A stretch of 63,340 bases of DNA, the filler included, from Olpidium bornovanus S191 (lineage: Eukaryota > Fungi > Olpidiomycota), in the NCBI GenBank assembly GCA_017911155.1. It is 30 parts of 30 records of this genome, joined end to end, with 100 filler letters (N's around TTAATTAATTAA, not from the genome) between each part and the next. Parts side by side here need not be neighbours in the genome. Positions count along the whole stretch, not along the records: positions 51,616 to 53,614 come from JAEFCI010005317.1; 29 more parts are not named here. One strand, 5' to 3'. The translations under genes were made by a program, and so were the position numbers. This document shows, piece after piece, positions 51,516 through 53,614 of the stretch (position 1 is its first letter; the number at the start of each line of letters is the position of its first letter). Under the pieces are notes generated by a model. That model made no database searches, was not told where the DNA came from, and saw nothing but the letters and a program-made list of their open reading frames with translations.

Positions 51516-52775
51516 NNNNNNNNNNNNNNNNNNNNNNNNNNNNNNNNNNNNNNNNNNNNTTAATTAATTAANNNNNNNNNNNNNNNNNNNNNNNNNNNNN
51601 NNNNNNNNNNNNNNNCATGCAAGAGATTCCTTTTGTTCGCTGAAAACGCGTGCGACTTGGGTGAGGAGATCGACTTTTTTTTTTCCTCGAGGGACACTCG
51701 AAACCAGTTAGAGCGATGCCTGGCGAAATCCTCAGGGTTTTCCTAGCTTTCTCTCTCTCTCCATTCGTCAGTTTCCACGCGCCCGCAAAAAAGTGCGGCC
51801 GGCCTATTGCATGAGAGTTCTATCCCTGTAGGTCACAACCCCTCCCCGCCCCCCGGGTGTTGGACGGACGGAAGTTGGCCGGTGCCTCCCGTGTGGAAGA
51901 GAGAGAGAGTGCGCGCGGGTCCCACGGGCAAAAGGCAAAATCTCGCAGGTTGCAGGAACCCGACTACCTTGTTGATGTTTTCCCTGCGTTTTCTTTAAGG
52001 TAGGGGAAAAAAAAAAAAAAAAAAAAAAAAAAAGGAAACCAACCATTGGTTTTTTCCCTTGGGTTGGGGAAGGGAAGGGTGGTGCGGTCGAAGGAGCCAT
52101 ACACGTTGAAAGGCGATCTGTGAAACTGGAGGAGGCGGAGTTCAGTGCTGGGTCTGGTGGCCGTCTCCAGGCGGTTCAAGTGTCGGGGAAACCCGAGCCT
52201 GACTTCGGCCTGAACAGGGCGGCTTGCGTTTTCTGCATATCTACTCACGCACGGCGGCCACCGCATACGGCCGCGAGACGCATCTCTCGTGTGGTATGTG
52301 TCTGCCTGTTGGAAATGAAGAGGCGGTAGAGACGCGGAGGCGCTGCGCGCACCAGCTCCTGCTCCCCTTTCCGTAGAATCCCTAGTTTCCCGACATACAA
52401 GTGGCCTTCTGTAGATAGCGCGCGAACGAAACTAAGAGAAAAACGAGGTTCATTCTCTCGCGGGCTCGCTGCGCTACCGTCTTCCCTCCGGGTTAAACAC
52501 TGCTTGGGTATCGCTGCCCCCTCGTCTTTCGAGGAAGACGGCGGGCTGGCTGGAACGAGAGGACGTGGTGACGCCAGGGTGGCACGGCAGCAACAATTCG
52601 CCGCGCTTCAGGAAACCAACCGCAGGATTGTCCTCGAGGTGCTTTCACGACGGGCGGCCCTTGCTCTGAAACAACAAGCAACGGGCTGTAGCGGAACGCC
52701 CCGGCGTTTGTTTCAAACGTCCGCATCGGCGGCCCGGAAGCCGCCCGGAGATTCAGCCGCGACGGGGGAGGGGCC

Positions 52776-53614
52776 ATGGTGCTCGGGTACCTGCTGCTCG
52801 CAGGAGCCGCCTATGTGGCCTACAGGACGAACCCGGACCCAAAGTCCTTTCGCACCTTCCTGGAAAACGATCCGGAGAAACAGCAGCGGTCGGGAGGAGG
52901 CGGCCGGAAGGGGAAGAGCTTCTTCTCGAAGCTGCTGGCGCCGCTGCAGAAGCACTCGGTGCCGAATTACACAGTCGACAACTACGCCTTGTTCAGCGTC
53001 GCCACCGTCTGCGACTCGTCGGGCGCCACCTTCCTTGGCGTCTTCGGCACCTGGTGGCTCCTCTCTTCCTCTTCTTCCTCCTCCTCGGCGTCTTCGGCGG
53101 ACAGCACTGACTTCGCTTCCGGCGGCGGCGCCGCCGCCGGCGAGGACCGCGCCGCCCTAGAACGTCAAAAGGCGGTCGGCCACAAAGGGAGGAGGGACTA
53201 CCGCTCCGCTGCCTCCGCGTTCTACAACGCGGGCAAGCTGTTCGAGCTGGCCTCCAGCGAAGCGTCCTCCGCCAGGCCGGGATCGGGCGAGTTCGAGGCG
53301 CACGAGGCCGCCACCGCCTTTGAAGAGGCATCAAAATGTTACAACATGTGCAACGAGGAAGGTGCGCGGGGCTTTCATTTTCCCCGTCTCGGAGTGTGTT
53401 CTGTCCGGGCGTACGGTCCCCCTCCCCCCTGTCCCACCTCGACGTTTTCAGATCGGTAGAATTTTTCACGCTTTGCCGCACCGCAGGAAGGGCGGTCGAG
53501 TGCGTCGAGACCGCGGCGAGGCTCTTCCGTGCGGTGCCGAGATCCGGTTGCCGAGCCGCCCGCCTGTACGACTCGCTAGGCGAGCTTTACCGCAAGCCTG
53601 AGCCGCCAAACATG
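52776..53614 (+). CDS. Membrane-anchored protein: TM + DUF4359-like domain + SNAP/TPR-like repeats, 3' partial
   Basis: MVLGYLLLAGAAYVAY-RTNPDPKSF...NYALFSV...FLGVFGTW followed in the same exon by DYRSAASAFYNAGKLF...HEAATAFEEASKCY...|RAVECVETAARLF...AARLYDSLGELY (alpha-SNAP-like). Confidence 0.7.

Follow-up and report, generated by a model that had tools for sequence, protein, structure and literature searches.

Can a SNAP, an adaptor that is soluble by definition, be permanently resident in a membrane? This question is raised by a locus of Olpidium bornovanus S191, which was analysed in a window of 63,340 nucleotides, filler included (the whole stretch of DNA under analysis, made of 30 parts of 30 records of assembly GCA_017911155.1 joined end to end). 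The locus lies in the piece at positions 51616-53614 (JAEFCI010005317.1), which is GC-rich eukaryotic DNA. A first, sequence-only reading had proposed that it encodes a membrane-tethered SNAP-like adaptor, with a hydrophobic helix and a small DUF4359-like domain fused to SNAP-like repeats. As an architecture this proposal is borne out, a predicted anchor and a SNAP domain being found together in the window protein and in its homologues; the adaptor function would follow from the resemblance of sequences. The window probably holds the 5′ part of an expressed gene for a membrane-resident paralogue of alpha-SNAP/Sec17 type, belonging to a family of early-diverging fungi. In most members of this family, a hydrophobic helix of ∼15 residues starting at Met1 is followed by a K/R-T-N/K-P motif, an alpha/beta juxtamembrane domain, a variable linker and the SNAP domain.

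The gene structure within the piece is the following:

52062..52775, plus strand: transcribed 5′ leader, minimum extent; the transcript contig of run X2 is unbroken over 52062-53359
52776..53459, plus strand: open reading frame, opening at ATG 52776
52776..53361, plus strand: coding exon 1, with the ATG, 195 codons and the first base of codon 196
53362..53486, plus strand: intron of 125 nt, GT..AG, phase 1, its joint found in transcript contigs
53487..53614, plus strand: coding exon 2, in-frame codons 53489-53614, encoding the next SNAP helices and ending at the edge of the piece

The start at ATG 52776 is backed by the homologues, most of which begin at the aligned Met, only a few gene models having extra N-terminal residues. 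The intron was predicted from sequence and then confirmed by spliced transcript contigs, with the joint 53359->53485 (cut +2) present in one contig each of runs X2 and X5. These contigs, which span the leader and the junction between exon 1 and exon 2, establish that the gene is expressed, and the X2 contig shows that the mRNA extends beyond the piece by 512 nt or more. In the raw RNA-seq runs X21 and X24, a sample of about 6% of each gave no reads on the piece. The helical domain is carried on in frame by exon 2, giving a coding part of 238 codons within the piece. Transcript contigs begin at 52062, just past a run of 27 A residues, and this position is the minimum 5′ extent of the mRNA.

The same locus is represented in the databases by GenBank entry KAG5460373.1 (‘MAG: hypothetical protein, partial [Olpidium bornovanus]’; P0001 in our searches), which is a 100% identical match and is annotated on the 1999-bp contig that makes up this piece. 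This deposited model (window 51857-53601) is wrongly constructed: 242 residues of 5′ leader ahead of ATG 52776 are translated, and exon 1 is left by a different donor, which brings exon 2 into the wrong frame and to a premature end at ∼53598. With the transcript-supported splice, the frame agrees with that of the homologues. As claimed in the sequence-only reading, the anchor, the small domain and the first helices share one exon, which ends at 53361. Since this single exon carries all three parts and some 30 homologues have the same arrangement, the fusion is real, and a splicing or gene-model artefact is ruled out by the transcript contigs and by the homologues of like layout.

The encoded protein is organized as follows:

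52776..53075, plus strand: N-module, residues 1-100, with a transmembrane (TM) helix, a short helix, a loop, the SFFSKLL segment and a four-stranded beta-sheet
52776..52823, plus strand: N-terminal hydrophobic helix, residues 1-16, a predicted signal-anchor/transmembrane segment
52824..52835, plus strand: R-T-N-P motif, residues 17-20, directly after the helix
53064..53138, plus strand: Ser/Gly/Ala-rich low-complexity linker, residues ∼97-121, variable in length and sequence among homologues
53139..53361, plus strand: first SNAP helices, residues 122-195, equivalent to approximately residues 37-95 of alpha-SNAP

The hydrophobic run of residues 1-16 is unbroken. After R-T-N-P come a short helix, a Gly/Lys-rich loop, the amphipathic SFFSKLL and a beta-rich stretch that reaches FLGVFGTWW, and the helices of the SNAP part begin at residue ∼122. 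The hydrophobic helix, the Ser/Gly linker and the helical part are located where the earlier reading had put them, and the motifs TNP..SF..FL, NYALFSV and FLGVFGTW that it had picked out are all present.

Homologues were sought with phmmer, using the 195-residue product of exon 1 as the query in an exhaustive search of 1.84 billion cluster representatives (E<=0.001); exon 1 and exon 2 were searched separately, never as one spliced product. The exon-1 search returned 32 representatives, namely this locus and 31 others, with matches spanning the N-module and the first SNAP helices. Many members are 350-420 residues long and align from their first residues to residue ∼190 of the window protein. 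Those with an organism name belong to the Chytridiomycota (Chytridiales sp. JEL0842, Borealophlyctis, Blyttiomyces, Entophlyctis, Dinochytrium, Nowakowskiella), Neocallimastigomycota (Neocallimastix), Blastocladiomycota (Paraphysoderma, Catenaria, Sorochytrium), Zoopagomycota in the broad sense (Basidiobolus, Syncephalis), Mortierellaceae (Linnemannia, Mortierella), Mucoromycotina, with Endogonales among them (Calcarisporiella, Jimgerdemannia), and Glomeromycota (Ambispora). Six to seven early fungal phyla or subphyla are thereby covered, and several further members are environmental sequences without an organism name. No dikaryan or non-fungal organism was found among the named members at this cut-off. 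The survey across fungi that had been recommended from the sequence thus reveals a layout recurring in many early-diverging lineages. Database labels of the members vary from ‘hypothetical’ and ‘TPR-like’ to ‘soluble NSF attachment protein’ and, for some, ‘vesicular-fusion protein S17’; the Ambispora member has been auto-named gamma-SNAP in UniRef. The maximum-likelihood tree of the family is poorly resolved, 10 of its 15 inner branches being open; the only groups that it recovers are one of blastoclads and one of chytrids, which is compatible with vertical descent. Seven short members (P0012, P0018, P0021, P0024, P0026, P0031 and P0032; 129-261 residues) stop after ‘..K-[KR]-D’, which corresponds to the first SNAP helix, and continue into tails without relation to the family; their appearance is that of gene models reading through into an intron conserved at this position, rather than of stand-alone N-modules.

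Assignment of the C-terminal domain comes from the full-length homologues. The Pfam SNAP model (PF14938, gathering score 25 bits) is passed by nine of the ten tested, with 61-157 bits and E values of 1.5e-16 to 7.9e-46, the exception being the Catenaria member P0022. Residues 105-373 of member P0005 align to residues 38-296 of mammalian alpha-SNAP, that is to its last residue and including the terminal EEDLR-type tail (E 7e-30, 107 bits over 269 residues), and P0005 also matches yeast Sec17 (E 5.8e-18). A family profile (alignment A2) compared with the PDB retrieves alpha-SNAP at 2.1e-44, Sec17 at 8.5e-43 and gamma-SNAP at 2.9e-14, as against 1e-5 to 1e-6 for natural (non-designed) TPR proteins. 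The only other strong matches, with designed consensus TPR/PPR proteins (∼6e-35 to 1e-8), use one repeat-like stretch of the profile (∼185-281), several of them many times over, and are not collinear like those with the SNAPs. The similarity extends from residue ∼36 of alpha-SNAP (helix alpha2) to near its C-terminus.

The exons of the window are more discreet on their own. Pfam found no SNAP match for them at E<=10, and only noise was returned from Pfam and NCBIfam; a phmmer search of the SNAP pieces against the PDB did not retrieve alpha-SNAP and gave either nothing or designed repeat proteins. A feature search with exon 1 likewise yielded no match. With a profile of the SNAP region of the homologues, residues 122-195 of exon 1 score 53 bits (profile positions 8-68) and exon 2 scores 34.6 bits (positions 72-108), the two matches being adjacent and in order. 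Because its short pieces alone miss the Pfam SNAP model and the alpha-SNAP structures, the window protein is assigned transitively, through its family, whose C-terminal domain is, as judged from sequence, a genuine SNAP of alpha-SNAP/Sec17 type. The by-eye alignment of the sequence-only reading holds, the window segments falling in the same columns of the P0005/alpha-SNAP alignment and of A2; the strings FKMAKNW.., HDAATCF.., EAINCL.. and AAKHH.. that it quoted belong to alpha-SNAP and not to the window. A generic TPR domain, the finding that was to have spoken against the proposal, is ruled out by the Pfam SNAP scores and by a family profile that places alpha-SNAP and Sec17 at ∼1e-43. Gamma-SNAP (PDB 2IFU) is likewise ruled out: it shares the SNAP superfamily with the family, but its profile match is ∼30 orders of magnitude worse than that of alpha-SNAP, and the family tail is of the alpha type.

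What separates the family from known SNAPs is its N-terminus. SNAPs are soluble and without a transmembrane segment, while the proteins of this family open, at Met1, with a conserved apolar stretch of ∼15 residues that is modelled as a helix. In 18 of the 31 members, the Olpidium protein included, the apolar run from residue 1 is unbroken over 15-19 residues (15 in fourteen of them); in the others it is broken by a single polar residue or Pro at position 2-4. The family mean of the best 15-residue Kyte-Doolittle window is 2.35. The helix is followed by [KRQH]-T-[NKR]-P, in which T18 and P20 are kept in at least 90% of the members, and five residues later by a conserved Phe. A variable low-complexity loop and an amphipathic segment of the W/F-F-x-[RK]-L-L type come next, and the N-module ends with the pattern P-x-F..D-Y-x-x-F-S, then [FY]-[LIV]-G-x4-W. 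Topology can be judged from the positive-inside rule and from the −3/−1 rule of signal peptidase. No basic residue precedes the helix; Lys or Arg follows it in about half of the members, among them the window protein, and His or Gln in most others. Small residues are missing at −3/−1 ahead of K/R-T-N-P, these positions being occupied by bulky ones (V..Y, V..V). Because of this charge pattern and the lack of a small-residue cleavage motif, the helix should be an uncleaved N-out/C-in signal anchor, with the SNAP domain predicted on the cytosolic side.

The N-module occupies the place of the element by which soluble SNAPs attach to membranes. Helix alpha1 and the apolar membrane-binding loop of solved SNAPs (F27/F28 in alpha-SNAP, F21/M22 in Sec17) have no counterpart in the family, whose alignments to these structures start at residues ∼36-38; in their place stands the TM plus alpha/beta module of ∼100 residues. 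Beyond this point, the residues of alpha-SNAP that contact SNAREs are R116, K122, K163, L197, L198 and Y200 (PMC6457932), and the functional roles considered here were taken from that work and from PMC5540461. With numbering transferred through the P0005/alpha-SNAP alignment, the equivalents of these residues and of K56 and K167 are:

K56: basic in 19 of 23 members; Arg in the window
R116: basic in 15 of 23; Arg in the window
K122: basic in 20 of 23; Arg in the window
K163/K167 (K159/K163 of Sec17): not conserved; beyond the piece in Olpidium
L197: variable, often Ala, Ser or Thr; beyond the piece
L198: Leu or Met in 15 of 18; beyond the piece
Y200: Phe or Tyr in 16 of 18; beyond the piece

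At the opposite end of the protein, interaction with NSF/Sec18 requires an acidic C-terminal stretch with a penultimate Leu (L291/L292 of Sec17; PMC5540461). The penultimate residue is Leu, Phe, Ile or Val in 15 of the 18 full-length members, with acidic or small residues before it in most, as in the tails ..EGSLR, ..EDLK, ..EDFR, ..GDLL and ..EDIR; by its sequence, the C-terminus of the family resembles the NSF/Sec18 tail of alpha-SNAP/Sec17. The family and alpha-SNAP/Sec17 (PF14938; PDB 3J96, 1QQE) share a helical TPR-like SNAP domain, an acidic tail with penultimate Leu and, for the most part, the equivalents of K56, R116, K122, L198 and Y200, whereas the soluble proteins have helix alpha1 and its loop (residues 1 to ∼35) where the family has an anchor module and a variable linker.

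The fold of the N-module was approached with an AlphaFold2 model built from a 31-sequence family alignment (A1). Its mean pLDDT (predicted local distance difference test) is 82, compared with 43 for exon 1 modelled from the single sequence, and it comprises a helix at residues 2-17 (pLDDT ∼96), a helix at 22-31, a disordered loop and four strands within 65-97. Shape searches with this model retrieved bacterial hypothetical proteins of 90-113 residues (TM-score 0.65/0.71), a DUF4359 cluster (0.63/0.57 over 81 residues, values that mean little for so short a domain) and a Tim29 cluster (0.61). With the Atlas model of P0005, the DUF4359 cluster scored 0.64/0.64, with the same caveat of domain length, and ranked first in a feature search (0.83), which makes DUF4359 the top named structural match of two independent models. 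Foldseek gave no PDB match at E<=0.001. The best PDB structure match is 7cgp_C residues 58-174 (Z 5.3, 83 residues), top-ranked yet less than one Z unit from unrelated folds; by published segment boundaries (TM 58-74), this is the TM helix of Tim29 with its intermembrane-space domain. Many weak fold matches in the PDB are NTF2- or cystatin-like.

Sequence comparisons point in the same direction, below accepted thresholds. Pfam Tim29 (PF10171) is matched by six of the 31 members (best E 0.005, best score 16.7 bits against a gathering score of 25), mostly over the TM and T-N-P segment alone, aligned to profile positions 46-76. Four members match DUF4359 (PF14271; best 16.5 bits, E 0.014, gathering score 27 bits), the best alignment placing residues 16-83 of P0007 on profile positions 3-77 of 103, with the T-N-P segment at the start of the profile. 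All these matches fall below the gathering score and keep one register around the TM helix and T-N-P. The window itself has no Pfam match to DUF4359, and the A1 sequence profile did not recover Tim29 from the PDB, where its best hit was poxvirus OPG107 at a non-significant E of 0.32. On the DUF4359 pattern suggested in the sequence-only reading, sequence, features and fold converge, but every similarity is below threshold and the window protein has no match of its own. The N-module is probably a remote relative of a module, found widely, that consists of a TM helix and a small juxtamembrane domain; membership of DUF4359 or Tim29 is not demonstrated.

Both families differ in context from the fungal proteins. 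DUF4359 shares with the N-module an N-terminal TM helix, a T-N-P-type motif, a short helix and a small beta-sheet, but consists of stand-alone, membrane-anchored bacterial proteins of ∼100-110 residues; a full-text literature search for DUF4359 yielded one paper, with a passing mention only. Tim29, a component of the human TIM22 complex (PDB 7CGP chain C), has a like TM helix and following domain, but also a matrix helix at its N-terminus and a chaperone-recruiting motif at its C-terminus, and lacks a SNAP domain; it has been reported only from the Holozoa, sequence searches having found no homologues outside them (PMC7523481). No N-terminal matrix helix or extension of the Tim29 type occurs in the N-termini of the family. 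As side observations, the TM plus intermembrane-space domain of Tim29 is the best structure match, at the same weak Z of 5.3, both for the fungal module and for DUF4359-like bacterial proteins; the combination of a TM helix with a small alpha/beta fold adjoins GYF_2, zinc-ribbon and Lcl_C domains in Bacteroidota, and also occurs in uncharacterised Streptophyta proteins of ∼250 residues. This suggests a widely reused membrane-anchor module.

How such a protein would work can be outlined from the soluble SNAPs. On SNARE bundles, alpha-SNAP turns its N-terminal loop to the membrane and contacts NSF with its C-terminus (PMC5540461, PMC8143792). The anchor would keep the N-terminal end of the SNAP domain at the bilayer and the domain itself in the cytosol, an orientation that would be that of alpha-SNAP in the 20S complex. 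SNARE complexes on the home membrane would be bound through the retained basic and hydrophobic contact residues, and NSF/Sec18 would be recruited and activated by the C-terminal tail. The permanent anchor would replace the membrane affinity of the loop, and the reach of the SNAP domain would be extended by the long variable linker. An engineered precedent exists in TM-Sec17, for which Wickner and colleagues placed the TM anchor of Vti1 on the N-terminus of Sec17: this protein is active in vitro, and its loop can do without apolarity when the SNAREs zipper fully (Song et al. 2017, PMC5540461). Both carry a TM anchor at the N-terminal, membrane-proximal end of a SNAP; TM-Sec17 is artificial and keeps helix alpha1 and the loop, for which the family has instead a juxtamembrane domain that is folded and a linker that is long and flexible. 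By analogy, the fungal family looks like a natural counterpart of that experiment. Among the papers covered by full-text searches, none described a SNAP with a transmembrane anchor, be it from fungi or from other organisms, and no already characterised family with this architecture was met. Most likely, the putative paralogue is a specialised protein that stands beside a canonical soluble Sec17 and was lost in Dikarya.

Several observations weigh against a working membrane-resident alpha-SNAP. The hydrophobic run is short, at ∼15-16 residues. The changes at K163/K167 and L197 listed above could mean that SNARE disassembly is weakened or retargeted, going by the sequence. The family, with named members only in early-diverging fungi, evolves fast, its terminal branches measuring 0.7-2.9 substitutions per site. 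Finally, the C-terminal two-thirds of the window protein lie beyond the piece, and the evidence for an NSF tail comes from the homologues. In another explanation, the protein is a SNAP-derived helical scaffold that is anchored on an organelle, mitochondria or some other, and has ceased to work with NSF and SNAREs, comparable to a signal-anchored outer-membrane receptor like Tom20/Tom70 or to a Tim29-like assembly factor. The lost K163/K167 equivalents and the fast divergence would fit, as would the Tim29 matches in structure and in Pfam. A short N-terminal anchor with a basic flank, such as that of the family, is typical of mitochondrial signal-anchored proteins. A mitochondrial role has moreover been suggested for gamma-SNAP (PMC1550239). 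Set against this are the acidic/Leu tail and the equivalents of R116, K122, L198 and Y200, whose retention in most members would be difficult to account for if NSF and SNAREs were not partners; an N-terminal presequence or Tim29-like matrix helix is also absent, and none of the similarities to Tim29 and DUF4359 reaches threshold. A scaffold of this kind is accordingly judged unlikely.

Two further explanations concern the ancestry of the protein and the nature of its helix. The family could be the sole Sec17 orthologue of these fungi, Sec17 being anchored in early lineages and soluble only later, in Dikarya. The near-equal scores to animal alpha-SNAP and yeast Sec17 speak for this, together with the name ‘vesicular-fusion protein S17’ carried by some members. 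A recent survey credits fungi generally with one alpha-SNAP. The blastoclad Blastocladiella emersonii, however, is reported to express homologues of both alpha-SNAP and gamma-SNAP (PMC1550239), the SNAP domain seems much more diverged, even in its best member (107 bits over 269 residues), than would be expected of an essential single-copy gene, and a soluble ancestor is more parsimonious, since animals and other eukaryotes have a soluble alpha-SNAP; a sole orthologue has little chance of being the right answer. Even slighter is the chance that the N-terminal helix is no anchor, being instead a signal peptide that is cleaved off, or a helix buried in the core of a soluble domain of cystatin/NTF2 type, in a protein that would be lumenal or soluble. 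A run of ∼15 residues from Met1 does recall a signal peptide, AlphaFold2 sets the helix against the sheet with high confidence, and the many weak NTF2- or cystatin-like fold matches agree with a buried helix. Yet the helix is apolar without an amphipathic pattern (Kyte-Doolittle ∼2.35), save for the one polar residue or Pro at positions 2-4 in about a third of the members, its bulky −3/−1 residues are unlike those of signal-peptidase sites, in the structural relatives DUF4359 and Tim29 the corresponding helix spans the membrane, and a lumenal SNAP domain would have no NSF partner.

The remainder of the piece adds little to this picture. An Rfam scan matched no family, and only two repeats were detected:

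52007-52033: perfect A27 run, just upstream of the transcript contig start at 52062
53058-53086: CTC/TCC repeat, the Ser codons of the linker

Seven single-base differences distinguish the window from transcript contigs of other runs (52506, 52606, 52632, 52634, 52699, 52772 and 53131); position 52772 is four bases ahead of the ATG, and 53131 C>G falls within the coding sequence of the Gly/Ala linker. They have the look of variation between strains or alleles. The soil metagenome runs X14, X16 and X17 contain 0.13-0.19 of the words of the stretch, which is compatible with the presence of Olpidium or close relatives.

A membrane-resident alpha-SNAP in early-diverging fungi would bear on an active question in the fusion field, namely how far the function of Sec17/alpha-SNAP depends on reversible binding of its loop to the membrane, so far addressed with the artificial TM-Sec17. 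A natural family spread across phyla, with the loop deleted and a permanent anchor in its stead, would be an evolutionary test of this idea. It would also provide a gene-loss marker for the Dikarya transition, and it predicts that in early-diverging fungi one branch of SNARE recycling or fusion promotion is organelle-restricted. For the annotation of genomes, database names such as ‘soluble NSF attachment protein’ are misleading for its members. Through a possible link between DUF4359, Tim29 and the anchor module, two families that are poorly understood would gain a first context.

A wider scenario may be envisaged, although we regard it as somewhat doubtful. Early fungi, possibly from the fungal ancestor onwards, would have kept a dedicated membrane-resident alpha-SNAP in which a DUF4359/Tim29-like module replaces the loop and hard-wires NSF/Sec18 recruitment, or fusion promotion of the Sec17 type, to one organelle, and this protein would have been lost in Dikarya. 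As a corollary, the TM plus intermembrane-space module of Tim29 would belong to an ancient family of anchor domains, common to bacteria and fungi as well, and would not be a holozoan invention. If this scenario is true, the dikaryan loss would explain why the gene has never been seen in model fungi.

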